From the NCBI GenBank assembly GCA_965637545.1, contig OZ281496.1:28272001-28336000 (forward strand): a DNA stretch of 64,000 bases. The letters are read 5' to 3'. Of this stretch, positions 9,802-60,837 are shown piece after piece. The DNA is from Phallusia mammillata (Eukaryota). A model generated the notes under the pieces. The model saw nothing but the letters and a program-made list of their open reading frames with translations. It searched no databases and was not told the origin of the DNA. A program made the position numbers and the translations under genes. The stretch's first letter is position 1. Each line of letters begins with the position of its first letter.

Positions 9802-10470
9802 TCATGTTACATTGTATTTTTCTGTCAGCAAATTTAATTTCTCAACATGTTTAGTGTCATCTTGTTCAAAATGAGTTTTCAGTGTTACAAAAATCTCGAC
9901 GAGCTGCTTCTGTTCTTTGGTTGACAGAAAATCAAGCAGTAGCCAAAATCGTTTGGCTTTACCCATAACATCAAGCACAGTTAAAATTTGAGAAGCATTG
10001 CTGTTTATATCACAAGACCCAATACACAGTAGAATTTCTCCCATAGGGTATTCAACAGCAAAACACTTGTTAAGTGTTTCTGCACTGATGCTAAAAAGAT
10101 ATGAGCTTTTGTCATGTTGAGTTTGGCATTGTTGTTTCCAGGTACGTTGAAAATCCTGACTGGTTTTTGGTTGTTTAATGTCTTCCAGTTTATCAGAGTT
10201 TGAATGGCCTACTTCAGATTGGCCTGTTTTATTTGTGGACAAAGCATTCCATTTTTGGTATGACATTCCACCCAGTTTATCTTCCCTATCAAGTGGTTTT
10301 AAATGCGACGCTTCCACAATATCACGAAATTCTTCATAACTTTGAACTTTTTGGTGAATAGCTCGAAACTTTGCATCATTTTCACGCTGGTATTTTTCGT
10401 CTTTAGCTACAGCAGTTGCCAGCTCTTTTTCCAGGCTTTTAAAGTCCAATGCATCGTCAAAATCTGTCAT
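9802..10470 (-). CDS. CCDC103: Dynein arm assembly factor CCDC103 (DNAAF19), intronless; likely start at 10470 (MTDFDD)
   Basis: LDFKSLEKELATAVAKDEKYQRENDAKFRAIHQKVQSYEEFRDIVEASHLKPL matches the CCDC103 N-terminal domain; RPAP3-like C-terminus (RFWLLLDFLSTKE). Confidence 0.93.
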   Translation of the reverse strand: MTDFDDALDFKSLEKELATAVAKDEKYQRENDAKFRAIHQKVQSYEEFRDIVEASHLKPLDREDKLGGMSYQKWNALSTNKTGQSEVGHSNSDKLEDIKQPKTSQDFQRTWKQQCQTQHDKSSYLFSISAETLNKCFAVEYPMGEILLCIGSCDINSNASQILTVLDVMGKAKRFWLLLDFLSTKEQKQLVEIFVTLKTHFEQDDTKHVEKLNLLTEKYNVT

Positions 10471-10686
10471 TTCTTTGTCCTTTTCAGCTATAAAATAACT
10501 AAGCGTACTTGACAACAGATTTCGATTGGAATAAGCAAGATTTCTATCCAAACCGTTAAAAAAATCCCCTTCATGTTTTGACTAATCAAGCGGAACCGTG
10601 AGCGGTAAACATAAAAATAAACAATCAAAGATCGAAAGAGTTGATTGTTCTTCGTTGCTACGATTTAGTGGAAAATATTTCAGAAT
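10471..10686. promoter_or_regulatory. Probable bidirectional promoter for CCDC103 and HAUS7
   Basis: Only 216 bp between divergent ATGs; forkhead-like GTAAACA (10605) and ATAAACAA (10617) plus a GTTGCTA RFX half-site. Confidence 0.5.
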
Positions 10687-34216: not shown

Positions 34217-37200
34217 TTACGCTGTGCAGTTTTCCTTCTTGTTCATGCTCCCTTTAACTGGGTAGACTTTGGAGTGTCGTGGCCAAACGCAGTTTGAAAA
34301 CTTTTTCATCACTCTGTTTAAAAATCGACGTTTAACCGATAAATTTGTTTAATGGTTTACATAACTTTTATTCAGTTATTGTAACACAATATGGTGAGCA
34401 ACGGCAACGAGAGTGGTATATACAAAATATATTACACCATGCTTAGAATTTTCGCGAACAAAAGCCAAAATTCCCATTCTTAACGTACGTTTTTTCATTT
34501 TTGACTTCATACTGTTATTTTAGTGCAAATTGTGAACAACGGTAACAGCACTGCCATCATATTATACATCGGGTTTAGCATATTGGCAAAACTGAGTAGG
34601 AATTGTAGTAATTTTCATATCAAAAGTAGTAATGTACACAAGTAAATCGCTTGCCTGGTATATTCTTTTCTGAATTGTACATTCATTGCGGCGTACACGA
34701 TAGGGTTGATCATCGATGTTAACCAGCCAAGGTTTGATGCAGCCATAAAAAATTCCGGCTCAATAAAGTTGTAATTACCGACAAGATTTAATATTAAGCT
34801 GAATAAATAAGAAACACAATTAGTTTGAACACCGTTTGTCATTTTGTATGAAGCGTTTCGAAACACGATGGTTTAAATTAGGCTGTAAATATAGGGAACC
34901 TTTTCTTATGTATTTAGCATAAAGCGTTTTGAAACAAGCTGTATTTAGCGATGAGGCAAAGTTTTACCTTGGTAGCGCGCAGAAGGCAAATGTGGCGCAT
35001 ATGACAGTGCTCATGTAAAGGAGTTGGCGTTGTGCTTTGGCGTGGTGAACGGACGTCCGTCTTACAATTGTCTGCAAGTTGTACAATTATTTTAATGTTG
35101 TCTTGCTCTTTCGACAAGCCTTGTACCATTTTGTTATTATGTATTAATCGTTCAGTAATCTTAACTATGTTTTTTACTACCGTTATATACCAGTTTAAAC
35201 ATACATTGTACCTGTATCTTATTTAAAGTTTATTATTGTACACAGACATCAACAAACTCAAGACATCTCAATACAACTCCACATTGATGCCATGCAAGCA
35301 TCGCTGCAGTCATATTAAACTAGTAAGTCGGGTTATAAGATTACCTCTTTGCTTTTCACGTTTGAAATTGCGGAGTTAATTCTTTGTCTCATCCGATTCG
35401 GTGTGAGTGAATTCAGCGACGCAGAGAGTGTTCTAAAAATAATACATTAGCGCCGCTCAAAACAGCAACAGTCAAATTTGGTCACAAGCATTTCAGTACC
35501 TTTTAAGAGAACGTGGTGCGTAAGACGACGACCTTTTTAGGTTTGTGACGCTCTCTTGTGGCGGCTTCAACGTTTTTAATGTTAGGGAACGAGGGCGCTG
35601 AAGACCGATGTGCGTTTTTGAATCGTCCGTGTTACTCTTATCCTCAAGCACATGATTGTTTGATTTATTCTTTGTGCATTCAAAGTTTGAGAATGTTACA
35701 GATCTAGTTTTTATGCTGTTTGGTTGTTTTGTCGAAGTTGTGCCGACTTCTGTAGATTTTTCTTCTATTAAATCCCCAGTTGTAGCTGCTCGACATATCT
35801 TCGCATGTTTTATCGAAACAGATTGGTGCCTCAGGATAGAGGTCTTGTTTTGACTGCTGCTGTCCGTAGGCGATGCTTTTTTCAACACATCGGTACCAGT
35901 AATGTTTTCAAAACACGTTGTTGAGACTATTGGCTCCATAGCATTGGGCTGGTTGGAGTACTGTCTCCAAATCCGCCTTTGTTCAGGAGTCTGTATTGGT
36001 GTTTTATTTACTGTTGTGGGTGTGGTTGGGGAATAGCTTAGACGCAATTGGTAGCCTGGACTTCGTTCACAGGCTCGACGCCCGGGAGAGGAGATACCAG
36101 CACTCTTCGTAATCTCATTGCTTTGACTTGCGCTATCATTGCTCTCAGCTGAAAATCAGTAAGACATTTTTACACCACGGTTGCCGGTAAAAATGCGGAA
36201 ATACATGTGTATTTGCTTTGCGTGATGCTGAACAATTGCGTTGGTATAAATTATACAACACAAAAACCTGCTGAATTTTAGTGCGTAGGTTAATGTTGGG
36301 AGCCCACATATCACGTCACACAGGTTCGAATGTTACCGGAATTGTAAACAGAACGTCAAAATAACAATCTTTACTCATCGATGCAAGTTAAATTGAACCA
36401 TAGTTAATCCTTATTCGGGTACATTTATGAACCAAACTCCTGGTTTAGGTTTTAAACTTTATTTTGGACAAAACCAACGGTTACGAAGTTAAATTGCCAA
36501 AATGCCCCTTACACATGATGACGACACTGTATTTAGGTTTTGTGACAGTTTGTTCAAGTATTACATTGATTTTTTTCTACAACTGCAGTACCGAAGAGTC
36601 AAGTAATATGGCTTTCCTAAAAGTTCTTTTATAAAGCTTATTGGTTTTGGCTGATCAAAAACCTTGTACTGATCGTGACAGAAGCGATTAAACATCTCCA
36701 ATAGAGTATATTCACTTTGTGCAAATTATCTGGCAAATTTGTTCTTAAACCAACTTTTCAAATCCGTATCAATTATTTCAAGTATCAGTGCGTCTAAAAC
36801 GTCTGAAACCGTTTTGACCAGTAAGACATCCATTTTACTGTTTAACAACATGCACAAAACCTTTTGCTTCACCTTGCGATTTTCTGTTGTCAATGTTGGC
36901 ATGACTTCGCTTCACTGTGTGGAATATTAAACCGTAAAGCACCACCATTCCGAATAAGGGAACAAACTGGAACAAAACTCGCATCACGAGAGAGTAGGTG
37001 TCTGCGAATCCCGGGCTTCTGATAATACAGATTTGCATGTGTGAACAAGTACCCTAGATATGTGGTTTCAAACATAGATTTTGATCACACCCCTGGGATT
37101 CACCGTATATCGAGGGTTAGACCAAAGCTCTTAAAAATAGCTTCTACTTTTTACGTGGTACTTTCTGCAACATAAACAGAAATGCGTTCAACGAAGCTAC

Positions 37201-40942: not shown

Positions 40943-43900
40943 AGCGATGTCACAAATAAATTACAGTCACATGCTACGTTGAATGCCTCAGCGGCTATGC
41001 TATATTCCAAAGGCCTTAGGTCATATACCTTTGCCCTGCAGAACTTTTGATAATAGCAACGCTGTGAATAGCATTGTAAAAGCTATGAAATTCAAGGATA
41101 ATGAAAGTGTAAACGAATGTAACGACTAGTTTGCCTTGCGTTAAACGGTCTGTGATCTGTCTTGTGACTTTCTATTACAGACTGATTTAATTTCTGAAAG
41201 TAGGAATCCTACTCCTACTGTAGGATTATCCGATTTGCATTGTCGACCCGATTTAAGACCTCTATAACGTAAGCAAATTAACGGCGACTTTGGTGGGAAG
41301 CTAGCGTGCTAATATTTGCGAAACACATTTGTGTCAAAAGTGACTCACCAGACGCCAATGTGTAAACAATGTAATTGTTTTGCAAGTAAGAAAATTGCAA
41401 GCAATTACAGGTTGGAAACAAAACTAATTACTAGTCAATCTGTTTCAGTAACATACTAACAATACTGTTTCTTCTTTTTTGAATAAGCCTGTATTTAATG
41501 CGTAAAGTAAATCTCTTTTCACATTTTCACATTTCTGTATAATTGTTTGTCTTTTTTCTTTCAAATACTAGCCAGACTTTTAAAGTTCACTGCACAAATT
41601 TACACAGAGTAGCTGTGCCACATTTTCACATGCACATGCAATTAAATGTTCATTATCATCTGGTTCCTCCTTTTGTACAACGGCAAATCGCATTCCAGAC
41701 AATACACACTTAACCGCAACTGTTCCAACGGCTTTTCAATTATGTCTTGCTGCTTTTGAAACTATTGGCCTCAACTGAAACTTGTGATTCGCTTTCTAGT
41801 CTGGGCAACAACACAGCCTTCGCATTTTAACGTCACGCGGAAGTTTTTACCAACTCTTGTGACATTAAAGTTTACGTGCTGGACTTTAAGGTCAAACTTT
41901 AAATGCCGAGTGCTTACTTTCACAAGTATTGATAGCAGACTGCCAAACAAAATTAGTCTGCTTATGTTGGCCTTAACAAGAAAACATATTTGCGAGATAC
42001 CTGTAATAAGTAAAGCTATGCACACATTAAGTGTAGCACAAATTTAGTTTCCTTGCTGCCACACGCCAAACTCTGACGTCACGCTGTGTAGGCGTGAGCC
42101 TGTGTGGTGGCAACATGGCTACGTCATAATACATCATTCTGTTTGCGCATAACCTGTGTTGTGATGCACAATTTCCAACACTATAATCTGACAATGCCTG
42201 AGTCTAAATGCTAAACGTTTGTTTGCTTTTTCACCGGTTGCGTAAGTCACGCTTTTCTCTGCATTTAGATTGACCCGCAACGAAAACTTTTTCCATACGT
42301 CTCGTCGCGCTGCCAAATCTGTGACCGCATAATGCATGACTGTGGAAACTATATTCAAAATCTTTTTTCACCATCAATTTTCCATGATCCCAGTCTTAAG
42401 CCAAATGCGCGTTAGACAATAAAATCTTACGTTCCTGGCGCTGTTTGGTACAAGCTGAATACTTGGCGATATATTTGCCCGTGACAATCTACCAACGACG
42501 GTCTTTTGCAAAGTTTAGCAATGGAAAATAGTCGGATGTTTTCAAAGAAACGGTTAACATCAACATTGTCGACTTACTGTGCTTCAACTAGTGGCCCTGT
42601 AGTAAAGTTTGCCACAACGCTGTAGATATTTGCTTTGATAGAACCTAATGCTTCCTATCCCTACTTAAAACAAAGCCTTTTCCACTATCTCATATACGCA
42701 GGCGTTTGTTGACTGCCTTGTGGCATTTTAATGTGAGCCTTTCATGATAAAAACCCACAACTATGAGTCAACGTTTGTAAAATTTTCACTACGCGAGCAC
42801 GTACGTAGAGAACATTGTCCAATTTTTGTAGCTCGTATAGTTTTGTTGATCCAGAAGGCTTTTAAGTTTTCAAATAAGCTTACATAAAAGCACGCGTTTG
42901 ACAACACTGAGACTTGCTATAAACTCCTATTGAAAAACATACCAGTAAGTCTCATTGAATGTACCTCTCTTTTTCTACCAGTAGACACTTAAGGTATAAA
43001 TCTGTGCGTATTCTAATAGCGATAATTTAGACGATTTGTATGAGTTAAGTACCTTATGCCATTTACTACAAACCCGCCAAGCCACCTCCCCACCTCGGCA
43101 CTAAGTCCATTTAGACGCCTATTATGGTTTTGACATTTTACATTACTTTTAAGTAATGGATTGTACTAAATTTAATTTTTTTATGTATAAATTCTTGCTC
43201 CCAAATTCGGTATTCCACGTAAACCTTTAAAATGTGATTCATGTAAACATAAAAGCATAAATTAAGCATTACTCACTAAACTATTGGGGAGACCAAATCG
43301 TGCGATATACCGCAAGATAGTACTCCTATAGCACTTTATAATACATAGATTACAAACTCGGCGCTGTCATTTGAAACGTGTTATTAACTATAGCTTTTAG
43401 CGGTCAACTATAACATCTTAACACATACAAACGGCATGCTTTTCTTAAACCAAGATTCCAATGTTAATATCTCCTACAGCTCTGAGGTACACAATTCACA
43501 TCCTTTCGATACTTTTTCCGCGTTTTCTACAACGTGGTTCGGGCTACTACGTCTACTGGTTGGAATATTTTTAAATTCTTGTCGAGAGTTGACAACCCAT
43601 GTACTGCGAACACGCCTCAGTAAGTTTAGCAATCTTGTCAAGCACTCGCGTGTATTGCTGGCAAATTATTTCCTTTATTGCGACGCGAAGCCCAAAACAG
43701 TTTGTTGATACTGAGCCGGGATACTGTGGAAGCACAAAGTTCATGTAGTCATATTATATAGTGATGAGTCTGCGGTCTTCAGAATTTTGTAACTTCTGTA
43801 GCGGGATTGTATTGCACACAGAACTGTTGGATACTGCAAATGTATAGGACACACCGGTTGTCGAAAGTAGCAAAATGTATTGTTTGTCATTATTATAGTT

Positions 43901-44065
43901 CTGTTGGTTGGGACAAACTGCGGTTTGGTGCAAGTGTGGCGTAAAAACTATATGTAATTATGTCGTAATAATTGTACATTTCAGGTGAAATCCACCCAAA
44001 TCGTATTAGAAGTTGTAAAAATAATTGACAATCTGTAGCTGCCTTTCTTAATTTATTTGATCAAT

Positions 44066-47000
44066 TTAGACTTGGCTTTGCACAGAACTGTAATCTTTCC
44101 CCAACGTTTCAAAGTCCGCCTTTTGTTCTTCAACAACGTCATCGGCCTCGTTGTGCACAATTGCGTCAAATGTAGTGACGTTCAAGTCCTCATCTTGTTC
44201 GAAAAGCCCGTCCAGGCCGCTGCGAACGGTCCTTGTGATCACGTGACCAGGTCTCCGCGAATCGGTTTCCTCAAATTTCCACCTAAGTGTCCCGGATGTG
44301 GCCAGGTGGAATTTTCGTGACTTTTTTCGAGTTGACTTTGCCTGAAAAAGTTTGACATTTGGTTGTGGCTTACATGAAAAACTAGGGCCAAGTTATTTTA
44401 TTTTAGCTGATGTATACCAATTGTTATAGACTGCCTTCTGCTACTAATTAGCTTTGTGAAGTGTGCACGTTGCAAGTTAGTTATGGTTGAAAAAAAAAAC
44501 TGTTTTTCGTCTATGTCTTCATTTCTAATTAGCGTTTATTGTACAACGGTTGATTATGTTTGGCTTAGGATTTTATGCACTGGGTTTTAGATTGTCTAAC
44601 ATGGCTAACATATATCCTTGCAAAGTGATGATGCTTTTTAGATTGGCTCAAGCTGTCATGGTTTAATACCCTGAATCGTTGCAGTCCTTCGCTTTACTTG
44701 CAATGAGATTTTAAGGAAAGATTTACTACAATGGCTCATATTACTTATATAAAAAAAGCTCCACGGCACATCGTATGTTGCCTGGCTTGTTGGTGGAGAG
44801 GAAGTGAATAAGACAACAAGATTAGCTTCAATTTCCTCAAGCAATTGCCAAGAAAGATACAGCGATATTTTAAGAGTGTTGGCATGCGGTCCTGTGGCCC
44901 AATGGATAAGGCGCCTGACTACGGATCAGGAGATTCCAGGTTCGAGTCCTGGCAGGATCGCATTTTTGTCAAAAATGTTCTATCTTCTCCTATCTTTGGA
45001 TCACATGTCCTATCTATGTAATCTCCTGATCCGTAGTCAGGCGCCTCTACTGGATTCTATGTAGGATTAATAGTAGGAAGATGCTTGCTTTGCTTATTAA
45101 GCATTTTGTGAATGAACTATATCTATTTTAACCCATTTGCGTCCATTTACTTTTGTGTGCAGACCTTTGAGCAAAGGACTGCAAACTTACTTCGGTGTTT
45201 TGTTGCGCAACTTCAACAAACGACGTTCTTGGTTTCCGAGTGCGTCGTCTAGTGGTTGCACTTTTCTCGACTCGTTTCAATGTCTCTTCAAGGAATTGGC
45301 CCTGCAATGTACAAACAAAACCCTTGTTTACAAACCAAAATCAGCTATTGATAATAATTCACCTTTTCATTTGTCTCAAGCTTACCCATGTGCATTTTTA
45401 TAACTGTTTCGCTTAATGATATTTTTAAGCTCCACTACGGTAGTTATACGCTACTTTATAAACCAAACCAGATAAGTTAGTCTAAATTAAACAGGTTCTC
45501 TCAAAAACTAAGTTAGTGCGCTTGTGCTACCTAGTTTAAACACTCAATATTACATTCCTAGACAATAGAAACTAGGCGTTATTTCAAAAACACACATGCA
45601 TAAATACATAAAATAAAACCTCCTTGATGATGGTTTCTGGGGGAGAAGTGATCTCCGGTTCTTCCGCAAATGCAACGTTGTCTTCGCCCTTAAAAAATCT
45701 GGTCTTGACCGCTGAAGGTTTTTTTCTGCACGTTAGAACGAATGTTACAAGGTGGTCTAGTACAGTGCGATGATTATGTTCAAACAGTCGTACTTTTTAA
45801 ATGAAGGTTTGATCCTCTTGCGGAGACTTTTTCTAACTTTGCTGTTTCTTTTACGAATGCTTGTCCGAATAACCGTTGCTGGCACTCTGAAAATAATGTC
45901 AAGGTTAACGTGTCAAGATTAAAAACATATGGGATCTGTTTTAGTTAATATAGGCTACAGAAAGCCTGTATTTAAATTCAGTTTGTTCAATCATAAATAA
46001 TGATGAACTTAAAAACTTGAATACATTTCGTTGTCATCGGTGTCCCTCATGTCTGTTCCTGCGTTCTCCGGTTTACCATATTCCCTCTTCTCCACCACGT
46101 AGTCCATGTCCGTGTTGCTAAGCAACTGGTCGAATATGGCCGCAGCTGTGTCGTGCTGAAGTTTTAGTCCACTGTGATTTGAGAGAAAAGTATATGGATG
46201 TATTGTGTGCTTTGTTCAATATAGACAGCTCCCAAATACTGTTTTTTAAGCTTATTCCTATAATTATCCGCTACCGGTTTATAGTCTACATTTTCCTGGC
46301 AACGGTGCTTGTGATTTGACTTTCGAAAGATTCTCCACTGAGCCTGTGTAGGTCAGTTGTTAAAGCTCGAGTCCCGGACAGACTCCTGTCGTGGGTTCGA
46401 ATCCCACGGCAGGCTAGACTTTTCTAGCCCTACGCCTTGACATATGGTTGTGATTTGTGAATGCTTAGTGACCGGTTGATTCGGTATGGCGACTTCAATT
46501 GGCCCAGCGTAGTGCTCTACAGTTCCCTTAGATTGTATTGAATTAATTTATGTGCCCAATCTCTGAAGGTCCTCTCAATGAACGTATAGTAGAATTTAAC
46601 AACTTATTTAAGAAAAACGCAGACTTTATTTCCCAATGCTTACAGATTGATCCAAATGTACATTTTAACGATATTTTTTTATTTTCAAAACTATACCTCG
46701 GATTTCTTTTCGTTGTGCTTTGTGTTGAATTCTTCTTTGCTGAGAGTACCGTCAAAGTTACGGACGAACCGGATCGCATAATGAGACCTATTGCTTCTGT
46801 ATGGCTTACGCCTGTAAACAGTTTAACAAAACTTAAGATATTAAAACACACTACGTTTACAGTACAAAGATTCAAAAAAAGGGCATTGTGACAAAACATG
46901 TACCTTTTGCGGATTCCCCGTTAATCTCCTCAATCCTGTCTCCAGCACTGAGGCCAGCGTCCTCGGCGGCGCTGTTTGTTTGCACAAACTCAACATACAG

Positions 47001-50000
47001 ACCCGTGTTGTCTTCTTGTATGCAGAACCCATATGACCCTAGCTTTTTGGTAATCTGCCAGCAGAAAAAGGGGAATCATAATTTCAAAACGTTTCACACG
47101 ACATTCAGACTACTTACGTGGCAAGTCTTTGACGCCGCCGTTTCTTGACGAATTTCTATTGGTTTTACGCTGATGACGTTTAAGGTAACTACGTCACCGC
47201 TGTTTCTCACGTGATCAACCGCTGCTTCGTGGTTGTCACTTTCAACATTGTTGTCATTTACCTACAAAATTGGGTAAATTATCTTTTAGTGATTTTCCAG
47301 TAATATCTACAAGCTATTTTTAATTCTACTAGCTATAACTTTGGGTGTGGTCTGTATTTCTAATCAGAGTTTTTTTTACCTCATATCGAAAATATTGAAA
47401 TAGTTATATACAGGATTTAAGTTTTGCATCAGTTTTTATTTCGTAAGCTGAACTTATGGTCATTACAAAGAGTCTCCAAGCTCCTAACATCTTTAACCAG
47501 CGCAAATTCCAAACATAAACCTATACATAAATTACTTCTGAACAACAACATATAAAATCCTTTGACACTTGGAAGTCTAGGAGACGCAATGTGGCTGAAA
47601 AGGCAGTTACCAACCTTGGATCTCCACTCTATATGTTTAAATTAGCCACGAGTGTTAGCGACGATTGCTTTAATTTCCTTACACTTACTTTAATCAGTCG
47701 ATCACCAACTTTCAAACCAGCGACATCAGCAGTTGAACCAATAGTCACATCTTCTATGTAATGCCCGTTACCGTCAAACCACAAGTAGAAACCGAACGAT
47801 CCGTTTTCCTTCTGAATCGTTACGTCATGCGGAAGCTTTGCGTCTAAAACACACCAAAGTGTTTTTAACTATTGACTTGTTTGTTGTCTTTGTTTGGGTT
47901 TTCTAGGCAAGTCATTGTATCCTATTTTAAAATTATTTTTTAACATCACTTGTTTTGACACTATCAAGTACCCACAGTTTGGCATGTAATTATTACTCAT
48001 AAGACGTGTAACATATTCATGTCTCGAAGTTTTGGCAAGAAGTACGTGAGCTTAGCTTCGACCCACCTTCTTGGTATTCCACAACCATTATCACTGTGCT
48101 CAATCCGTTTGCGTTGATTCTCACTGTGACTTGCTCATGATCGTCTCGTTCCACATTCACACCGTTCACCTAGAAATAAACGTCCCAGTAAAAATTTAAT
48201 TAATCTTTTACTGAGCAACGTTTTACAAAATACTTTAAGCCGCAAACATGCTCAAAATCATTCGACAAATAGTCGGTTCAAGAATAGAGGGGCGTCTTTT
48301 CGACGTATTTTACTCGATTAGAGTTTTTAATCACCTAAGTGTGGCATGGACACATGTAGAAACTAAGTGTAGAAACAATCATCCTATTGTCTCATTGCGT
48401 TTAACTTACCTCGATAATTCTGTCACCGTCTCGAACCCCAGCTACGTCAGCGGGTCCTCCCTTTTCAACCCAATGTACCACGTGACCAATGCTCGTCCCG
48501 CGACCTTCCATAAATGAATTGGAATACGCGAGATGAAAGCCATAACTATCATCCCTCCGAGATTTGCGTACAGTTACTTCCTGTCGAACTGTTTTTGTCG
48601 TGCTGCTCTTCTGCTGTTGAGTGCCTAAAACAAGAACGTTGTTTCATTTCGACGAGGTCTCTTATAATTAGGATGTAATTTTTCCTGACTTTGTCAGAGC
48701 ACAGTTCACTGAAATAAGGCACTGGGGTAAAATGTGATGTTGATGTTCGGAATATTCTTTACCATTGCTTCTCATCCAAATTTATTAAAATGTCACATGT
48801 TTTACAAAATAATGGCAATACTTTTTCCACATTTCAACACATTACTCATTTGGGATAAGGCAAAAAGGAAAAGGCCCAGCACGAAAGGCAACTTTTATTC
48901 AATATCATACCAACGAGTCATATTGTATTCCTACCTGCTATTTCTGTTGATTTGTTTTTCAAATTCTTCGAGTTAAGATCAACAGCATTTTTCTTGCAGT
49001 GGACGTAGGTCTTGGCGTCGACAGCCATCAATGTTACAACATTAGTACAAGCCTTGATTCTGTAGAACACGTCTTCGTGTGTGTCATCTTCTATGTTTAC
49101 ACCATTAATTTCCACCAGTCGATCTCCTGGCCGCAGTCCTTTGAGTTCAGATTTGTTAGTTGTAATAATGCTTTAAGTTATTTTGTTTAAATAGAATTAG
49201 CACTGGTGTTATGGTTCCAAAATTTTAGTTGCACGGTTTCATAATTAAAGTTGTTGTGTTAAGTAGAAAAAAGTAAAATGACAGTTTGACTGCGTTTTTT
49301 AATAAAAATATAGTAAAAGAAATAGTTCAAAAACTTCACTTGTTATTTAATCCAATATGAGTATTTCAAAAACTACCTTTGTTCTGTTTGGCCAGGTGGC
49401 AAAGACACCCATAGAAAGTGCTAGACAAAAGGTTCTTATCTTAAGATGTATCTTAGACTGCTGGTTCATACTGTATCTGAAAGTTGTAAGTAATGATTGC
49501 CGATTCGACAAAGTCTTACCAGCTTTATCTGCCGGACTGTCGATTGTAACATCTTGTACGAAGTGTCCATCTTCGTCGTACCACAAGTAAAACCCGTATC
49601 CACCCTTTTCACGTGTGATACGGAACAGGCAATCCCTTCCCCTCACAGAAAACGAGTCCGACCTCTCGTCAATTACAGTGAAGTGGATCAGGTCACCGCT
49701 TTCTCGTATCAGGGAAACCACCTGTAAATGTCGCAAATACGATTTGCTGTGAACTCGTCATCTGCAATTTGTTGAATACAACTCTGCAAACCAATGTTCA
49801 ATAAAGAACGTTAAGCACCTAGTGTGTATTAAAAAAATGCAGTTATTCGGCCCCTTTGTTGCAATTTAACAACTTTCAGGGCCGTATCCATGTTGCAACG
49901 AAAGAATGAACTTTTCCAAGTTTACCTCGTCGTGGCCCATATCCTCAACTTCTACGCTATTGATTGACAAAATCCTATCGCCATTGCGTAAACCAGCTCT

Positions 50001-53000
50001 GTCTGCTGCTCCACACTCCACCACTCTGGAAAATATAGTTGTTTTTTCAACTCGCAAAATATGCCAGTCACATCATGTAAATGCGAAAGGACAATGCAAT
50101 CAGCGTCAACTTCAGGTTTTATGTCAAGTAACTCTGCTTTTCGCGAATCTAGAGTATTTGTTTCCGTTTTATTCTGGCTTCTTCCTTAAGTGATCTCTAC
50201 TTACCTTCGTATAATTTGGCCATTCCGGTCTCTGTCAATAGCAAGGAAGAATCCATGTTCCTCGTCATTGCTTTTGCGCAAAATGCACTTTCGAATTTGT
50301 TCCGTTGTATCGGTGTTTGGGGTTTCACCTTGCACAAGTTATAAGTTTTTGAAAATTTAAAAACGCTTGTGCAGTAAAAAATCTAAAACAATGATTGGCC
50401 TAAATCAGTGGTCGGCAACCGCCCGGTACCGGTCCGCGAGAAGTTCGTTACCAGGCCGTATAATTTTTCAGGTTAAATGCTTCAAAACATTTTGCCCATG
50501 TATCCCGGGGATGATAAACTAATTTAAGCGTTTTTATTGCTAAATATTTGTAGGTTTTTGAAGACCGGTCCGCGACAAAATTTCACTTTCAAAAACGGTC
50601 CGCAGTGCAAAAAACGTTGCCGACCCCTGGCCTAAATAATAGGCTATTTTTATGCTTAAGTTTTGAATTGTTATAAGCATTCGAAAGGTGGTTACCGTTG
50701 TTGTTTAGGCAAAGTACAATCTGATTAGATTTTTTCAAACTCAATTGATTTACAAACCTTTGAGGCTTGTTTCCCCTTTGATAGTAACGTAGTCTTGAGT
50801 TTCAACCATTGTTACCGATTCGTCCAGTTTTAGTTCAGGTGTTTGGTAGTTTTCGGTATCAGTCTGTTTTTGCTCTTTGGGAACGAATACAGGCTCCTCC
50901 GGAATCGAAATAGCGTCGAAATCTATGTCGGTCATACCCTGTGTGTGCATAACTTGTTAATAGATGTGTCTCATAACTTAAGACACCTGAATGTATAAAG
51001 CCCCACTGATTTTATCTTTTGTGTGAAAAAAATAATAATTCTGGTCTTGTCCGTGTTTCAATCTGAAACGTACTCACCGCGGTTTATAAAGTTTGCAATA
51101 TGTTCGATCTGTATTCTATTGTTTACGTGGATAGAGTACAGTACATATTTTGTTGTGGTTTTGCCCTTTTTAGAGTCAAAGAGTCAAATAACTTGTACGC
51201 GACGTTTAATGGGATTAGATATTTACATGAACCAAGATGGTAAAATTTTCTAGCCTGCCTTTGAATTTGGAACAAGTCTTTATAGTGGGAATACGCTATT
51301 AAAAGTTTGCCATTGGGTAATGATTTGTTTTCAATAAACGGGTAAATCACTTACCGTGGTCTTGAACTCTACTATTTGTTTGTAATGTTTCTTTGACTTT
51401 TTGTCGATGACAAGCAGCACGACCTCGCTCTCGCACTCCCTCAAGCGTTGTAATACCTCTTCTGGAGTTTGTCGGTCGACGTTGACGTTGTTGATTTGCA
51501 CAACACGGTCGCCGATCTGTCAATCAAACAGGTCAACTTTTTAACTTTCATAACATTAAAACGTTAAAAAAGGTTGTTTTACATCTTTGATAGAACTTTA
51601 TTTACACATTTTGCTCAACAGTCCCCTTAGTACAGTGGTTCTTAACCGGGGTTCGATCGAACCCCAGGGGTTCGGCAACGCCGGATCAGGGGTTCGACGA
51701 AGGTCTTTTTGAAGTGCAATACAAATACTCGTTTTTGACTTTAGGGTCTATAGTCGGTAAAAATGGCAATTTGTATTTGCCAGATATCAGAACACTGGAG
51801 GGTTAAACTTAGGCAGGGCTGTTTTAAACATCTCGAAATAGTTTTTGTGGTACTAAAAAGAGTATTACCAGCATAATAACCATATGTATCAGACTTTTTG
51901 TACGCCTATTGTGTGCCAACAATGCGAACAAAACAGGTTCCACAAGCATCACAATATAGATTATGACATCATAAACACTTAAGACTGATCTCCTCGTTGT
52001 GCAGCTCAATCTGTGTACCGAGCTAGAAATTAATCTGGGCTTTTTGGACGCTATTAGATGGTAAATACATAAAATAAGTATTTTAAAACAAAAATAAGCA
52101 GGTAAATGGCGGCCGTTGGTGAAATAAGAATCTGCGATGCGGCCGTCCTAGCAAAATGGTTGTGCACCCATGCACTAAGGTTTTAATTTCTTTTTTGACG
52201 TAACAAAGAGCATTGTTTTGGCAGCAAAAACTTATTTCTTCATCTTTTTCATGTTAGTGTACAGATGCTAAATACAATGCTTCATTTTGTTAAAAACAAA
52301 AAATTGCCGGAATTAAAGCAATAATGAAACAAGCTGCTTGTATTATTATGTCAGAATTTAACAAAATGACAAACAGTAACTGTTGCCACTACGTTTGAAC
52401 AAAAACTAATTATGACCCACCAAGGAAAATGGGGCAAAAACCTAGGATGTAACTTTGGGGTTCGACCAAAGGCTGAAGAATATCGTAGGGGTTCGGCCGT
52501 TATAAAAAGGTTAAGAACCACTGCCTTAGTATGTTTAGATCTCGCAAAGTGATCGTCTTAAATAATTCTCTACTTGATTTGTAAATGCGCTTTCAAAGCA
52601 AGGAGCAAGGAAAAATACGAAACAAATACGTCGACCGTCTGGTGGTTAAAACACAACATACATGAAGGCCAACTCGATCAGCAGGTCCTTGTGGATCAAC
52701 TTCTTCAACGTAGTGTCCGTCTTTGCTGGAATCGTACTTCACACAAAATCCAAACATTTCATTCTCTTTGAAAATCCTACATAGCCTCGGCTTGTTCCTG
52801 CAAGAAATAATTGTTTGCATAAGGTTGAAAGTATGCGTAAAATGTAACTCCCACGCGTTAATTGGACTTTGATTTTTTATGTGCATTGTATAATAAATTT
52901 GCCGTTTGATTTATTAAAGAACACATACGAGGCCGGTCACAGACTTTTCTAAAAGCAGAATCAAACAAAAGTGGCAAATAATTAATTGCTGCTTGAGTCA

Positions 53001-56000
53001 ATGTCATAAAAAAACTTAAACATTACTCTACGTAGATATTTGCATCAAGCTTTGACAAACAACTACAAACCCCGCACATTTTTCAAACAGTAACCTTTTG
53101 TATCTGTTGTCGTAGTCCTCGTCGACGACAATAAGGTCAGCAGTATTTTCGTGCTCGCAAATCGCCTTAATTAGTTGCTGATGAGCTTCATATTCAACGT
53201 TCTGACCGTTCACTTCCACGATCCGGTCTCCAATACGCAAACCTGCCCTATCTGCTGCTCCTCCACAATCCACCCACCGTATTACCTTGAAATAAGTTGA
53301 CGAGTATTAGTTCATTGAATCAACTAACATTTTTTAGGTCGTGGGTTGAACCCCGCCGCAGGTTGTCGTGTTTTGTCTTTCCCTTGAGCAATGTGATTTT
53401 GTACAAAGCGCACAACCAAATGCAAAGAAACATCTTGTCTTATTGTATACGCTGTAAAAACTCATGACATGTATTGGTTAGTTGTTTAATTTTACCAATT
53501 AATCTTCGCAAAAGGTACTTGTTTGTCAAATTGGAAATTATCTTATACCTGACCAATGCGGTTGTTGTCTATCACAACATATAATCCAAACTCTTCTTTG
53601 CTTCGCTTAACCAATCGGCAATATCGCGGTTTTTCGTCCCTTCGACTTTTCCGTTTCGCTGAAATAACAAATTTACGTTTATACCTCCCATGAAAAGATT
53701 AAAATCGATGGCAAGCACTCACGTTGCGGAGTAGTTGGCTGTGAACCAAGGTGACCATTGAAGTAATCTTCTGCTAGTGATGCTGTCGTTGTTACACTCT
53801 TTTTCCTGAATCGGAAAATATTATATTTAGTAATGTGTTGTAAAATGTAAACTGATGTAAACATTTTGAACCAACATCTTGTCAACACCCACATAATTGA
53901 TAAATCGCGATCAGTTTTTGTTGAACAGCGGTTGATTTGTTTGTAGAAAACTGTCGGACCATTGCGGCAAATAAACACTACTTGACACATTAAGCATACA
54001 AGGTTTACGTTGTAAGTAAATCCCCTCTGCAAAGAATATTGTATTACTCCCATTATCTAACGCTACTTGGACTTTTTGTATCCAGAATCTTTGACATAAA
54101 ACAACTAACTGGTCAAACTTTTGTTTAGATGTACCTGAAGTATCCGTCGGTTTTCGGATCAACAACAAGAAAATGGACGACGTCGCCACTCATGCGTATC
54201 CTCCTCACCACGTCACGTGAGTTTTCTCTTTCGATGTTGACCCCGTTGACTTCAACAATGCGGTCACCGATTTTTAAACCTATCCAACAAACACGTTTTT
54301 TAGAACGAGTTTCTCAAAAGTTTTCTCAAAACTCAAAAGTGAACTCAATTTGATAGCAAGACAAAAATTATGCATACCTTTGCATGCTTCAATTTAATTT
54401 AAAATTCAATTTTTTAGCACATTGCAGAGGCGATCATTTGAGGCAAAAAAGTTAAATTAAAGAATTGGCTGCGTTTAGAATGCAAGACTGAGCTAAAACG
54501 CGCCTAGTCGTTTAAAATGTAAGACAGCAAAACAGGCACCGAGTCGTTTATTTTGCTTGTTGATTCATAAATCAATCCTATACTTTTAGCCTAAAATGCT
54601 TTTTTGTGAAACCTTTTACATAAACTTTAACCAACCTGCTTTTGCACCCGATCCGTCTGGTGTAAGGTCTTCAATGAATTCTCCCTTTCTATCTTCCAAG
54701 TATAGCAAGTTGAAACCGAAACCAGTTTCAGATTTGTCGATCGTACAAAGTCGCGGTTTGTAGTCTGACTTTCCATCAGTCACGCCTACAAGAGAACAGC
54801 AAACCAAAAAACATTATCGTATACTTTTTGATCAAAGCCAATCCCTGTTAACCCTAATAAGCAAAAAATAGTCGGTACTGCTTTGATATTTAAAGTGAGG
54901 TGCCGGCATCCTGTAATCAGTTTACCAAGTTACCATAGAAGCATATCCAAAATGATGTGCTACATTGCAATGTTTAATGTACATCTCTTCCAATGAAACC
55001 ATTAAATAAGTTCATACTATTTTCGAGTACTTACCTTCGACGTTGCGTAGATTGATGTCGACCTTGTTCTCCTTATACAAGTCGCTTGTAACTCGATCAA
55101 CAACCAGTACTCGCATCTCACTACCCGCAAACTCGAATTTGTACTCGACATCTTCGCGTTTAGCATTTTGGGTCGTGGTTCCGTTTAACTGTGAGCAAAA
55201 TGAGATGAAATTGGAAAAAAAATACGCTGCAACTGCAATAAAAGAGTAGAAAACTAAACAAAATTTATGTGCACCTAATGTGTTGTTAAGGGCCAAGAGA
55301 CCTAGAAAAAATGTGGGTTTGATTCGTTGAAAATTTACATTGGCTTGTACATCCTTACATACAAAATCGTTTTTTCTAAGTTTAGGTCTTTATTTCTTGA
55401 CCCACCAACATTCTTTTAAAGTAGGCGATGTTTTGAGCCTGTTTGTTAAAAGTATTTATTAAACTATGTCATCGCTTGCTGCCCCATTCATCACCCGACA
55501 AGATTGTCTCAACCGTTTTAATCATAAACCTGCCTCTATAACATGGGATCCTTCCTTCAAACCAGCAAACTCAGCCGTCGATCCTGGATCCACGTGACCG
55601 ATGACGTATTGGTTTCTGACGTCATCGAACGTCACCGTAAATCCAAACTGATCATTTGTGTGTTTCCGAAGCACACGGTAGAGTTTGGGCAGAGGCAGCT
55701 CTGCAAGCAAATTGTTTATGTCCAAGAGTCCAAAATATGTTAACTTATGTGTTTTTTACATACCTCGCATCAATGGAAGTTGTCTTTTCAAGCTTGCAAT
55801 GCGTTTTAACGTCGGAGCATCTTTAGAACTGAAATTGAACACAATTTTATCAAACACAAAAAATACATTATTTCGCCATGTCGTCATATCAGATGGCTGC
55901 GTTGCCTTTATGTAAGTGCAACTCATGTCAACTTGTGCGTCGCTGAACTACGAAACAACACTAAATGCACTGTATAATAATTTCTACTTACTCGATCAGC

Positions 56001-58956
56001 CCCGAACTTTCATCATCTTCATCGTCATCATAGTGAAACTTCCTTCTCGTGACTAAAATCAAAACATTAATTTTTTTACGAGTTTATCAACAACACAACC
56101 AAATTACGAGCAGTTCTTATTCATAATGGACAAAAACTTTTGATACAAATGGAAAAAAATAAAGAAAACAACTAAAAAGGCAAAACAAATCAAAGTCGTC
56201 CCTACACATGTGTTTAGGCGAGTTTACAAAAACAAATGAAATCTATACGATTTTATGATTACGAGAAGAAAGTTTAAATTCACTTTGTATCAAACGTATC
56301 CCAAATATTTTTCGTATCAGTCGGCAAAAAAAAAATCTTTCTAATACAATTGTACTATCCTTCACTACATTCACCTACATTGGTATATCATGTATAGAAG
56401 TCCAGAAACAAAACCTCCACATTCCAGTATAAACAGCACAGAGGCACAAAACCAAAGAGGCCAGGCTTGAATGAACCAATGGACTTGACTTTTGATTTTC
56501 ATCAAACAACCCTAAAACGTATTGAACAGTTTTGTTATCCTTTTAAAACTCCATTAAATATTCCGAAGGTCGGTTAAATTGACTCTATTGTTTTCAAGTT
56601 GTTTGGCAACACGCAATTAATACGTATGTTGAAAACCCCGAAGAAAAAGCAATAAATTAAAGTAAATGAAGCGAAAAAAAGTACAAGAAAATGACCATAA
56701 AAATCTCTTTTTTAATTTTTTTTAAAAGTCGGACAATTAAAATCAACCAACCCTATTTTTATCAAATGAACCAAAATAAATTCTTTCTTGATTCACTAAA
56801 CGAATTCTTTTGCACAAAAAACATTTACCAACCTCTGAATATACGGGTTTTGTTACTAGAATTTGCTTCAGAACTGTTTCACCAGAACACGATGCTGGTA
56901 AAGTTGTAATGTTGGAAAATCGGTGGCGAAAGTCGTTTGGTTTTGTGAGACCGCAACACTGAAGCTGAAATACAAAACAACATAATTGTAACGCCTTTAA
57001 ACACTTCGATTTGATTGTAGAAAACACTTATATTAGGTTTAGTGCAGATCATGCTTCTGTTTATTTTTACCATGTAGTATTATTGCTTCCAATAACATTA
57101 GAACTTGACAATGATTTGACAGAGATTATCTCATTACTTCGTGCCTTGGGGCCATAGTTTTTACTTTATGCGTAATATACACGTAGCCCATAGACTTTGA
57201 TGTTTTGGATTAACCTGACGTACAGAATTTCAAGTAATATTTATAGAAAAACTCACACCAAAAGTAAAGCAGTGCGTAAGACACTTTGATGGTGGCAAAA
57301 ATGCTAATTTGACTTGTATTTTAAACTCATTTTGTTGTTAACTAACAACATGTGTTTTACTTACAGCCATTTGGAAGTGGTCCACTGCCTTTTGGTCGCT
57401 TTCTGACACTGGATAACCGATAAAAATGTCCGTGTACCATTTCTGGGACTGGTCTTCGATCTATTGTCATGCAACCCAAAATAATAGGTAAGCATAGGCC
57501 ATGAGACTATACACTTAAGTGTATTAAACAATTGCCCACATCCTTTATTTTATTACGTAAAATGCAACAATGTTTAAATGGTAATAATAAAGTAGACCAG
57601 TGGTTCTCAACCTTTGCCTGCACTCCGAACCCATATGATTATTTTTTGCTAAAAAACAAACCAATTAAATGTTTGATATGTAAGGGGGCTTTAGTCAAAC
57701 TTCCGAAGTAGCTAGGTTAAACCACACTGGTTTACTCGGGCCTAGTTAAGAACCACTACATGTTTTTGTATAGATGGGCTAGGGATCCCGGTAGTTTCTA
57801 ATCACAAAATGACCAACCGTTTTCTTTTGATGCATGAGAACCACGATGCCGATAATCTGGGCGACAGCCATAAAAAAGTGAGCCAGGAGCGACTGAAATG
57901 TTAAAAAACAAACTGGTTAATGTCACAAAAATCAAATCATAAATATGGTGCACATTTTGCTCTTGGTTAAGAACAGATGTAATTTGCAATCAAATTGACA
58001 ATCTTTAAATGAACTTTTTCTATTTATCATTTTCCCTGTGCTTGCCTTCAGAGAACTTCGAACATTTCCACTGACATTACTCACCAGGGCAAGAAGAATG
58101 TCACTTTTGGTATTTGCTCCACAAGTTCCAATGAAGGAAATCACAAGAAGGATTATTCCAACAGCGAGCAGTGAGTACAAAGCTGTAAAAGAAACTTTTG
58201 TCGTCTTTAAAGTGGCCTATTTTTACCTTGTTACGTAGTGGTAACCTTAAAAAGATAGGTTGAGTAAATTCTGACCTATATACACTTCATCCTGCATACT
58301 TGCCGATATGCGAATTATAGATTTAATGTAAATGTCTTAGTTGGTGGATAGTGTGAGTTAAATAATTTCTGTGGATTCTGGCTTTCGAAGATTGCCTTAC
58401 CTGTGGTCATTGGTGGAAATGTGTTGTAGTACATGGTGCTTGCGTGGTCGATAAACAGGAGCCAAACCGCCACACTCAGTACTGCACAACCAGCAAACTA
58501 CCAAAACATACGATACATATTATTAAACACTTAATTTTTTGCTGACAGTCAGACATTTTACACCGAAATATCGATACTGATATGTATATCAACTCAAAAA
58601 TATCTGTTGCAATGACAAATTGTACTCAAAATTACACACATCCTTTTATGGAAGCTTATTTGACGGTCTCATAAATATATTTTCACCAATAACTGAACTA
58701 GACAGTAATTCCGTACAGAAAAGGATTAACATAACTTGCTCTATTTTGCTAACTTGTAAACATTTATGCAAGATAAAAACGTACCCATAGCAGTATGTTG
58801 AATATCAGCACCAGTGATCTTAGTACCTTCCCAGTTAGTTTGCTGCTTGCACATGGTCTTCCTCTGAAACGAATTATCTCAAGTTTAAATACTGATCTAC
58901 AGCTTTGAATTATGTTGCTCTGTGTTGTACCTGACTGGACCTAGAACGTTCTTCAT
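44066..58956 (-). CDS. Putative tetraspanin-(PDZ)x9 fusion protein, ~35 coding exons, ~1,500 aa
   Basis: Phase-consistent exon chain from ATG 58956 through four TMs and CCG, two linker exons (55992-56052, 55764-55828) and nine PDZ domains to TAA at 44066. Exon choice around 45600-46150 is tentative. Confidence 0.65.
44888..44960 (+). tRNA. tRNA-Arg (ACG), intronic and antisense to the tetraspanin-PDZ gene
   Basis: GGTCCTG acceptor stem, D-loop AATGGATA, anticodon arm CCTGA-CTACGGA-TCAGG, T arm CCAGG-TTCGAGT-CCTGG; 73 nt. Confidence 0.97.
44963..44967 (+). terminator. Pol III oligo-T terminator of tRNA-Arg
   Basis: TTTTT starting 3 nt after the tRNA 3' end. Confidence 0.8.
45020..45046 (-). 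repeat. Exact 27-nt inverted copy of the tRNA-Arg anticodon-arm region
   Basis: AATCTCCTGATCCGTAGTCAGGCGCCT is the reverse complement of 44909-44935. Confidence 0.95.
46342..46535 (+). mobile_element. tRNA-derived SINE
   Basis: Cloverleaf-like head with GAGTC/GACTC and GTGGG-TTCGAAT-CCCAC stems, degenerate D arm and no U33; followed by a non-tRNA tail that recurs at 25868 and an AT-rich end. Confidence 0.75.
46695..55700 (-). CDS. Array of nine NHERF/PDZK1-like PDZ domains
   Basis: Nine repeats of (R/K)xxx(F/Y/H)G(F/L)...A..AG(L/V)..GD(R)(I/L/V)..(V/I/L)N. Binding loops in order: DQFGF, TGFGF, EEFGL, EMFGF, EEHGF, GGYGF, DSYGF, GSFGF, GSYGF. Confidence 0.93.
50406..50629. mobile_element. 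hAT MITE family C (copy 2)
   Basis: TIR CAGTGGTCGGCAAC/GTTGCCGACCCCTG; perfect TSD GCCTAAAT. Confidence 0.92.
51633..52523. mobile_element. Non-autonomous hAT (Charlie-like) element, 891 bp
   Basis: Perfect 14-bp TIR CAGTGGTTCTTAAC; perfect TSD CCTTAGTA; subterminal GGGGTTCG repeats. Confidence 0.93.
53337..53392 (+). repeat. Degenerate tRNA-SINE fragment
   Basis: B-box-like GGTCGTGGGTTGAACCCC followed by TGTCTTTCCCTTGAGCAA, resembling the CCTTG(A/G)GCAAG motif of many tRNA-SINEs. Confidence 0.4.
56379..58956 (-). CDS. Tetraspanin module (8 exons; 4-Cys EC2)
   Basis: TM1 RSLVLIFNILLWFAGCAVL, TM2 LLAVGIILLVISFIGTCGA, TM3 ..VAQIIGIVV, EC2 DHFQMALQCCG..PASC..EGCLMKI, TM4 VLFILECGGFVSGLLY. All exon lengths and phases checked. 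Confidence 0.93.
57598..57758. mobile_element. Degenerate hAT MITE in a tetraspanin intron
   Basis: CAGTGGTTCTCAAC ... GTTAAGAACCACTA; no TSD. Confidence 0.6.
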
Positions 58957-60837
58957 TTGGTTGATTGTTTGATTTGAGTCTTGAAATGTCAAATTAGAGT
59001 CATTGTTGTCATTCTACCTGCTTGGTTGTATGTCTTTTGTTTAAACACGTTTGAATACCCGTTAACCGTTAATTTAATTTAGGACTAAACATATGTGTCT
59101 TGGTTTTTCTTTTCATTATTAACCCTGCAACAGAGTACACGTATATAAAGAAAGCTACCGGGCAAAGAGTAGAAAAATTACATTCTATCATTTAAACAAT
59201 TTACCAACACCTTCTACAATGGTCTGTAATGTAATCAACCAAGCCAAAAGATTAAAGACTTTTTGTATTCCAACAGCACAAAGTATTGTGGTTGAGTTTG
59301 GCGTTGTTGACATTTAAAACTCAGCTCTTGTTTCGCAAATTGGTTAATGACTACCGTACTTTACCACTGTAGAACTTTTAACCTTTGTTCTACTAAATTC
59401 TTACTGGTTTGCATTTGAGTTATCTTTTCACTGACATTTTGAACTTGCTCTCTGAACTTTTGAACTTTTACTGAGAATAATTTCTGGTGATTTCTAAAGT
59501 CTTGTTAAAAGTTTACATGTGTCACCACAAGCTTGCAACTAACAAGGTAGTTCTGAGAGAAAAGGAGATATCCGAACTGCTTGATTACTATTCTCGAGTA
59601 CTTGTTGGGGTTTTGCGTTGTGCGAGCGCACAGCTTTCTGAAATATGTCTAATGCCTCAGGGCTTCCATGACAAACCAGTCTTTTTTGCAAACAACAAAC
59701 GCCAGTTATAACCGCGTGTTGCCATTACGACGTCATGGAGCACAACGTTTAGTGCATTCAAACTGGGCGTTGTTTGGGCGTGGGCACTTTTAAATACCTT
59801 CGTTTGGGAAACGATTTTACATTCCTATTCCACATTCAAACTGTTATAACTGCGATTAATGGTTTGGTTGCTTGTTGAATTGTACCATGTTTGTTGAAAT
59901 TGAGATCATCTTCATTTGTTACCGTTGTAAAGAGTTGTTGTGTTGGTTGGTAAGGTTTATCTTTATTTTATACTGAGCAATGTGCACAAACAATTCTAAA
60001 ATCTATCTACTGACCTTAAAAGTCTGCCGTATTGAGGTATTGCTAGGTGTGACTCATTCGTGGATTCAAAGTTGTTGGACGAGAATTTGTGTCTCGGGCT
60101 CAAAATAAAAACGTCGGAACATTGGTAAAACGCTGAACAAAGATTTGGCTTGTGTTTATATAAACTGTTGCTGCCATAAAAAATTTGCCCGAAAAGCTCT
60201 ATAAGGTCGATGCTTTGTGTTTGTTTGTTACAAGATCCGCAATATCTTCCAGCACTTCTTAATATTCAGAACCCATCGTTGTCTGGTTTCCACAAAGTTT
60301 TTTCTTGTACACAAAGCCAATCAACTGTTGGTTTTCAGGAGTAGCGTGTTTGACTGGCCCGTTCAATTTGTGAATAGAAAAGGTAGGTTGACCTGTCGCT
60401 CAAATTATGTCACGAGTATCAGAGGCACGCGCTCATGTTGATACGAACTAAAGTGGCCGAGTCAAGTGGATAACGATGCGCGATTTAATGGTGTGAGAGG
60501 CACCAGGTTATCATTAAATTAAAATCGATTGCAACGTGATGCCTTTTATTTCACACGATTTATCAAAAGAAGCTTATGTTGAGAGAAACTCAGTGTTAAA
60601 AACTGCTTGGCATATTGTTCGGGTGGACAGATTGTGATTGAATCGTTCAGACTCACCTGACTTAGTTTGTTATAAAAGTTTTGCCTTGTTCTGTTTTATA
60701 ACTTTTGTTAGAACAGTGTCTGTGGTAACAGAAAGGCAATGAGGAGTAGCCTAGTTGCTACCATCTTGGATGTCCAATAAGCTTTTTCAAGAATACGTTT
60801 TCTGACTCTTTGGCGAATTTGCAACAAACGAATTTCA

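Follow-up and report, generated by a model that had tools for sequence, protein, structure and literature searches.

Tetraspanins are thought to organise membranes by lateral contacts and by the recruitment of adaptors in trans, for which they use very short tails. A short cytoplasmic C-terminal tail is typical of the family, though not strictly defining, and ordinary members have 200-350 amino acids (aa) with a C-terminal tail of a few to ∼20 residues. CD63 reportedly interacts with syntenin-1 (Latysheva et al. 2006). Peptides from the C-terminal tail of CD81 bind the PDZ domains of EBP50/NHERF1 and Sap97, and the proteins co-precipitate (PMC2610370). Scaffolds of the NHERF/PDZK1 family, with two (NHERF1/2) or four (PDZK1/NHERF3 and NHERF4) PDZ domains, are soluble adaptors recruited via ligand tails and ERM proteins. 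Here we describe a locus in a 64,000-nucleotide (nt) stretch of Phallusia mammillata DNA (contig OZ281496.1 of assembly GCA_965637545.1, forward-strand positions 28,272,001 to 28,336,000; "the window", in which all positions below are counted). The stretch very probably holds one minus-strand gene whose main mRNA gives a protein of ∼1,525 aa, composed of a tetraspanin, a linker, nine PDZ domains and a tail, which would work as a membrane-anchored scaffold. The observations cover the structure of the transcript across the fusion point, the domains encoded and the conservation of the fusion.

The tetraspanin part is like the CD9/CD81/CD53 type (PF00335) in its four transmembrane (TM) helices and in a large loop with CCG, PxSC and GC motifs and four cysteines in all. 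It differs in what follows TM4, where ∼1,280 residues stand in place of the short cytoplasmic tail typical of tetraspanins. The PDZ domains are closest, in sequence and fold, to those of NHERF1-3. Fish NHERF3 is collinear with PDZ1-4, and PDZK1 domains are among the best fold matches of a homologue; the present protein has five more PDZ domains (nine in all) and a membrane anchor, namely its own tetraspanin. The two PDZ domains plus ERM-binding EBP50_C that define NHERF1/2 (EBP50 family) do not describe it. CD81 with EBP50/Sap97, and CD63 with syntenin-1, pair the same types of partner (a tetraspanin C-terminus and a PDZ scaffold), but these regulated contacts are non-covalent and depend on a short motif at the C-terminus. 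In the present protein a peptide bond makes the link, and the stoichiometry is thereby fixed at 1:9.

RNA Evidence Across the Fusion Joint

Exon 8 (56379-56511) encodes the end of the second extracellular loop (EC2) and TM4, and ends in phase 1 (CAA T|GTAGGT). It is followed by intron 8 (56053-56378, 326 nt), by exon 9 (55992-56052; acceptor TTTTAG, donor GA|GTAAGT), which carries the juxtamembrane basic residues and the acidic cluster of the linker, and by exon 10 (55764-55828; acceptor TTTCAG, donor G|GTATGT), a second linker exon that runs into the first PDZ1 residues. With these exons joined in phase, the frame is open from TM4 via the acidic linker into PDZ1 without a stop. Neither AATAAA nor ATTAAA is found in intron 8, which has only the weak variants CATAAA and GATAAA. 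An earlier sequence-only reading of the locus had given these coordinates, the donor of exon 8 and the phase-1 junction, and had noted the absence of a linker stop and of both polyadenylation signals; on re-reading the minus strand, all of these were correct. It had further proposed RNA reads over 56379 to 56052 and 55992 to 55828 as a check, and both junctions were present in the spliced contigs described here.

Sequence words from 54000-59000 are present in 21 public runs of the same organism, and about a fifth of the words of this region occur in the RNA-type runs, as expected for exons alone. Logan contigs of four runs, from four studies, were placed on 53500-59400. The joints 56379 to 56052, 55992 to 55828 and 55764 to 55700 are carried by spliced contigs in runs of three studies. 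A single contig in run X1 (5,164 nt, depth 30.7) and another in run X2 (5,100 nt, depth 152.9) lead from the 5′ untranslated region (UTR) to the PDZ exons and include all eight tetraspanin exons, the three fusion joints and PDZ exons beyond 53546. Run X17 gave the same joints on two contigs, whose ends overlap by 30 nt (k-1) at the joint between TM4 and exon 9. The RNA-confirmed joints are GT..AG on the minus strand, except for a single GC..AG intron with its donor at 55533, after exon 55700-55534.

Intron depth was zero in every bin of the four runs, including 56061-56257 in intron 8, and intron 8 is skipped in the X1, X2 and X17 contigs, with no contig covering it. The zero depth indicates that there was no DNA carry-over and no assembled form that retains, or terminates in, an intron. 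In the RNA contigs, no loose ends were found at the acceptors 56052, 55828 and 55700 beyond the expected neighbouring exon.

Two minor observations were made at the joint. Run X17 alone has an A>G change at 56413 (plus strand), synonymous at Gly234 (GGT>GGC) and adjoining the overlap of its two contigs. A 15-nt inverted repeat (93% complementary) pairs 56036-56050, the first bases of exon 9, with 56261-56275 in intron 8; it may be due to chance, as several similar pairs occur in the AT-rich 470-nt stretch.

Conservation of the Fusion

The PDZ6 exon (49721-49521) was used as query against 1.8 billion representatives. Among the matches were the Oikopleura dioica protein CBY38478.1/E4YSN9 (P0001, 1,181 aa) and a 731-aa protein (P0014) from a 3.2-kb ENA contig. 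Both contain Tetraspanin and PDZ by Pfam, PF00335 scoring 112.6 bits in P0014 and 27.1 bits, truncated, in P0001. PF00335 and PF00595 also occur together in P0080 and P0081 (other O. dioica lineages), in P0084 (Logan contigs) and in P0087 (Logan contigs and Tara Oceans metagenome scaffolds). The spliced model was aligned to P0080 and P0081 in one high-scoring segment pair (HSP) each, at 33-35% identity over about 1,270-1,340 columns covering both halves. With P0014, one HSP at 48% identity covers model residues 17-735, across the tetraspanin, the linker and PDZ domains.

In some relatives the fusion is directly visible in the DNA. In metagenome contig L009, one uninterrupted open reading frame (ORF) corresponds to model residues 20-642 (TM1 to PDZ3), and more PDZ ORFs come after it. 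A single 608-aa ORF with Tetraspanin and two PDZ domains is present in the Tara scaffolds L003 and L004, and the ORF of L001 (ENA ERZ17083101) is uninterrupted for 731 aa. TM4, linker and PDZ1 thus lie in one ORF in L009, L003 and L001, with no intron at the fusion point.

Two of these contigs showed irregularities further downstream. The 731-aa ORF of L001 stops right after PDZ4 (L001:2400-2430), at the position of the exon 19/20 boundary of the window, and the contig continues as non-coding; an intron may have been retained here, or the contig may represent a short isoform with the tetraspanin and 4 PDZ domains. In L005 (Logan SRR23998775), an insert of ∼80 nt inside PDZ4 (L005:2374-2416), which by its sequence looks like a tiny intron, divides the fused ORF into ORFs of 619 and 1,067 aa. 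Together the two L005 ORFs amount to ∼1,680 aa and include a long tail rich in K/E.

The O. dioica proteins E4YSN9 (CBY38478.1), E4YUG7 (CBY39106.1) and OKI2018_I69 g14144 match the window's protein in the order of their parts (tetraspanin, acidic linker, PDZ array, short conserved C-terminal motif) and are collinear with it at 33-35% identity. As predicted, these proteins are shorter (1,166-1,216 aa) and stop not far beyond the motif that is conserved past PDZ9. Their entries are labelled "PDZ domain-containing protein" or "unnamed protein product", and in two of the models the N-terminus is truncated, with loss of part of the tetraspanin. Both domain families are well known. The sequence-only reading had stated that no tetraspanin with a covalent multi-PDZ array is known to have been described. 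A full-text search of about 8.4 million papers and preprints likewise brought up no account of a tetraspanin fused to PDZ domains. In the databases the architecture is already public as uncharacterised predictions (E4YSN9_OIKDI and others).

Among the 101 proteins compared, the tetraspanin part was present only in the fused relatives; a ten-PDZ protein of Priapulus and fish NHERF3 are without it. The nearest named homologues are tunicate, namely O. dioica and a fragment from Ciona intestinalis (H2XRV4, 463 aa) that starts at PDZ2 and covers PDZ2-5 only. Searches with the fused-protein alignment and with P0080 returned O. dioica only; they were word-indexed, limited to 8,000 candidates and insensitive, and have little bearing on other phyla. 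If the ascidian label of the window is right, the fusion spans the split between ascidians and appendicularians and is old within the tunicates.

Tetraspanin, Linker and Predicted Structure

The 5′ UTR and the start codon with the first 8.7 codons lie in exon 1 (58931-59125, spliced from 58931 to 58863), the RNA contigs starting at 59125 (X1), 59098 (X2) and 59082 (X17). The remaining tetraspanin coding exons 2-8 are 58863-58785, 58497-58401, 58182-58085, 57892-57818, 57460-57365, 56964-56833 and 56511-56379, with all joints in RNA contigs at GT..AG sites. Four hydrophobic helices were found at residues 26-44, 68-86, 102-120 and 222-240 of the spliced model, all within the first 245 residues; the TM4 peak (222-240) corresponds to 56451-56395. 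No further hydrophobic helix was found later in the first 1,324 residues. These are most simply four TM helices with both termini in the cytoplasm, a topology that we infer. The large loop has CCG, PASC (PxSC) and EGC (GC) in exons 7-8, and its cysteine columns are invariant in two homologue alignments. PF00335 matched single exons where expected along the profile, with scores of 20.6 and 16.6 bits.

The linker has ∼45 residues, basic next to the membrane and then with an acidic cluster. All fused homologues share its pattern: one or two basic residues after TM4, an acidic run, a hydrophobic pair and the start of PDZ1 as E-L-P-x-P-K/E-L-F. One may speculate that the acidic cluster with serines and the hydrophobic pair act as sorting signals, as they resemble acidic-cluster and dileucine signals.

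An AlphaFold model of residues 1-400 of the homologue P0014, made from nine sequences only, had a mean predicted local distance difference test score (pLDDT) of 62. Its four long helices have pLDDT 70-85; the large loop is poorly resolved, whereas PDZ1 is well folded. Residues 245-291 had pLDDT below 35 and may be read as a disordered linker. With the N-terminal part of this model, Foldseek returned CD9 first, CD53 next and CD81 further down; with PDZ1 it returned PDZ domains of NHERF1, NHERF2 and PDZK1 at target TM-scores of about 0.7-0.9. By sequence, P0014 matches CD9 at 4e-18, and CD9, TSPAN7, CD53 and CD81 are its best solved matches in sequence and fold.

The PDZ Array and the C-Terminal Tail

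An iterated search seeded with one repeat found nine PDZ repeats in the spliced model, at 84-125 bits. The carboxylate-binding loop x-[FY]-G-[FL] is visible in all nine, and in an alignment made by eye, helix B opens with the histidine that goes with class-I ligands (S/T-x-hydrophobic) in six of the nine. Scores of single exons above the 23.2-bit cut-off of PF00595 were 36.2, 38.6 and 29.5. PDZ1-4 are collinear with fish NHERF3 (P0021/XP_018605656) at 30% identity over 476 columns, and the best solved-structure match of window exon 53285-53073 is NHERF1 PDZ1 (5e-13).

PDZ1 (55087-55668) is encoded by exons 55700-55534, which has the GC donor, and 55188-55035; it scored 90 bits in the repeat search and PF00595 was found on its first half. 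Exons 54785-54636 and 54279-54135 encode PDZ2 (54143-54756), which was found by the repeat search, with PF00595 at 29.5 bits on the second half. The joints of both domains are in RNA contigs. A linker exon (53805-53723) precedes PDZ3 (53109-53629), encoded by exons 53658-53549 and 53285-53095, for which RNA shows the joints down to 53549 and the opening letters of exon 53285; the profile scores for the PDZ3 exon were 44.4 bits (PF17820) and 36.2 bits (PF00595).

The other six domains have inferred exon limits. PDZ4 (51394-52790; exons 52797-52662 and 51516-51355) was recognised by the repeat search and PF00595/PF17820. It is followed by an acidic inter-PDZ linker exon of 60 aa (50758-50938), without any Pfam family but with a weak match in the relative L005. 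PDZ5 (49656-50293) takes up exons 50328-50205 and 50025-49926 and the start of 49721-49520, limits that coincide with those of the HSPs in the relative L008. PDZ6 (49008-49622; repeat search, Pfam) comprises the rest of exon 49721-49520 and exon 49138-48935. PDZ7 (48065-48574; Pfam scan, repeat search) is encoded by exons 48624-48410 and 48169-48067, PDZ8 (47163-47832; repeat search) by exons 47843-47689 and 47261-47118, and PDZ9 (46732-47129; PF00595 38.6 bits, repeat search) by exons 47054-46904 and 46811-46697.

The C-terminal tail of ∼240 residues is low-complexity and disordered, basic at first and then acidic. Its exons were placed by frame, splice scores and the contig-length check at 46171-46077, 45878-45794, 45725-45596, 45301-45191 and 44368-44066 (with the stop). 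Conserved counterparts of 46171-46077, 45725-45596 and 44368-44066 are present in L008, L009, L010 and L005; certainty in the gene model is lowest for the three middle exons of the tail. The last exon is without any Pfam family. EBP50_C was found neither on it (in a Pfam scan that left out the middle tail exons) nor in the homologues' Pfam lists. The model ends in S-Q-V, which from its sequence is a possible class-I ligand and could fold back on a PDZ domain.

Gene Model

The complete minus-strand model has 35 coding exons and a coding sequence (CDS) of 4,578 nt for 1,525 aa (172 kDa). The proposed CDS limits, an ATG at 58956-58954 and a stop ending at 44066, both fit the model. Exons down to 53549 were taken straight from RNA contig joints. 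Below 53549, where the other 19 exons lie, junctions were set between peptide anchors by frame and splice scores and then mended using relatives. This procedure replaced a home-made exon-chaining gene finder, which over-predicted or skipped exons and was dropped because, of the 15 exons confirmed by RNA, it found only 8-14. In a length check, 169 nt of 5′ UTR, the 4578-nt CDS and 417 nt add up to 5164 nt, equal to the X1 contig. By this sum the contig ends at 43649, 25 nt past the AATAAA at 43679-43674, and the inferred 3′ UTR is 43649-44065.

Two candidate donors were rejected. The donor at 53071, the best by splice matrix, was replaced by 53095, since the homologues lack the extra eight residues that 53071 would give. 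A GC donor at 46063 was discarded in favour of the GT donor at 46077.

Alternative Explanations

The locus might instead hold two genes side by side. One would encode a tetraspanin with YQCR* as its end, the other a PDZ protein whose first codon is the ATG at 55770 (MRELPLPK), and the joined RNA would be an occasional functionless read-through. The sequence-only reading had kept the two genes as its alternative. Indeed, intron 8 has an in-frame stop four codons in (TGA at 56373-56371, so that its retention would give a protein ending YQCR), there is an ATG in exon 10, and contigs cannot prove that all joints lie on single molecules. However, intron 8 lacks both a contig and a canonical poly(A) signal, the acceptors show no loose ends, and the joined form was the only one assembled, at depths of 24-153 in three studies. 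The homologues in O. dioica and marine contigs, moreover, keep both halves in one collinear protein, those in L009, L003 and L001 have TM4, linker and PDZ1 in one ORF without intron or stop, and the linker pattern is conserved. Judged by these single-ORF homologues, the two-gene reading appears largely refuted, and we consider it very improbable. An operon with trans-splicing was not adopted as the principal explanation, since cis-splicing takes out the stop codon and the homologues with a single ORF speak against two cistrons. Still harder to credit is a chimera formed by de Bruijn assembly from two transcripts with shared short words: the contigs do come from a k = 31 assembly, but the joints fall exactly on GT..AG sites with the frame kept and recur in three studies, and sequences assembled independently from other species show the parts of the protein in the same order. 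What the sequence-only reading had favoured, one gene with a tetraspanin spliced in frame to nine PDZ domains, is supported by the RNA contigs of three studies and by the collinear homologues.

Separate forms might accompany the fusion as its minor companions, either tetraspanin-only by retention of intron 8, or PDZ-only by an internal start or spliced leader at exon 9, 10 or 11. Such forms would be compatible with the single fused gene as the source of the main product. Spliced-leader trans-splicing is established in tunicates, contigs drop rare variants, and the end of the L001 ORF after PDZ4 may reflect, in that relative, intron retention or a short isoform. Set against this are the lack of unexpected loose ends at 56052, 55828 and 55700 and the zero intron depth in four runs, and we regard additional forms as unlikely, though with an appreciable chance.

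Several points count against a single fused protein as we describe it. The RNA evidence consists of k = 31 assembled contigs, not of single molecules, in which rare isoforms are dropped, and no word spans two joints because exons 9 and 10 have 61 and 65 nt. The RNA type of the runs was guessed, though the skipping of introns shows that they are complementary DNA. Single tetraspanin exons remain below the PF00335 cut-off (32.1 bits), the profile having been scored exon by exon only, and the exons below 53549 come from splice signals, homology and the length check, not from reads. H2XRV4 was the only Ciona entry found, and as a fragment starting at PDZ2 it speaks neither for nor against the fusion in Ciona. 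The protein may be cleaved in the linker, and minor tetraspanin-only or PDZ-only isoforms may exist.

Proposed Mechanism and Implications

Translation into one stable protein, its ligands, its subcellular site and its biological role are proposals. The tetraspanin module would place the protein in tetraspanin-enriched membrane domains. With the C-terminus of the tetraspanin in the cytoplasm, the entire PDZ array would hang beneath the membrane, tethered by the flexible linker of ∼45 residues. The nine PDZ domains would then capture C-terminal S/T-x-hydrophobic tails of transporters, channels and receptors, as PDZK1/NHERF1 do. The function would be that of a membrane-anchored PDZK1-like scaffold, an in cis equivalent of the trans contacts that vertebrate tetraspanins make by short tails (CD81 with EBP50/NHERF1, CD63 with syntenin). 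The sequence-only reading had suggested that the protein clusters transporters or receptors in tetraspanin microdomains, which is a reasonable proposal.

A conserved weld of a tetraspanin to nine NHERF-type PDZ domains indicates that the coupling of tetraspanins to adaptors can be hard-wired. By the logic of gene fusion, it leads to a testable prediction, that CD9/CD81-type tetraspanins and PDZK1/NHERF scaffolds cooperate in other animals. A wider view, which we put forward tentatively and hold to be slightly more doubtful than probable, is that an ancient covalent tetraspanin-PDZK1 scaffold exists across tunicates, organises microdomains with nine docking sites, and is a "Rosetta stone" predicting a partnership of CD9/CD81-type tetraspanins with NHERF/PDZK1 in vertebrate epithelia. 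Tunicate embryos offer a tractable setting for finding what a tetraspanin microdomain assembles. The database labels described above call for caution in annotation, as "PDZ domain-containing protein" says nothing of the tetraspanin and two entries lose part of it.

Other Features in the Window

Run X9 (study P3) is without sense mRNA of the fusion gene. It has a 734-nt contig (depth 7.1) of a spliced plus-strand transcript spanning 35293-58170, with exons at about 35293-35322, 54129-54216, 57367-57487 and 58052-58170 and canonical AG|..|GT sites. The exons of this transcript run antisense over coding exons 14, 6 and 4 of the fusion gene. With stops in all three frames, it looks like a spliced antisense non-coding RNA.

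A tRNA-Arg(ACG) gene lies at 44888-44961 on the plus strand (Rfam 61.4 bits, also found by ARAGORN), within an intron of the tail region and antisense to the gene. A tRNA-Ser(GGA)-like element at 46341-46416, likewise plus-strand and antisense, was found by ARAGORN only, below the Rfam threshold, and may be a tRNA-derived repeat.

Elsewhere in the window, three long ORFs, each uninterrupted, lie close together in a stretch of 3.5 kb, at 7021-8085 (minus), 9033-9695 (plus) and 9802-10551 (minus). They encode IFT46 (PF12317, 338 bits), a UFM1-specific peptidase C78 (201 bits) and a protein with Dynein_attach_N and RPAP3_C, which by its domains looks CCDC103-like. From their sequence the three appear to be intronless, and two of them are ciliary genes.

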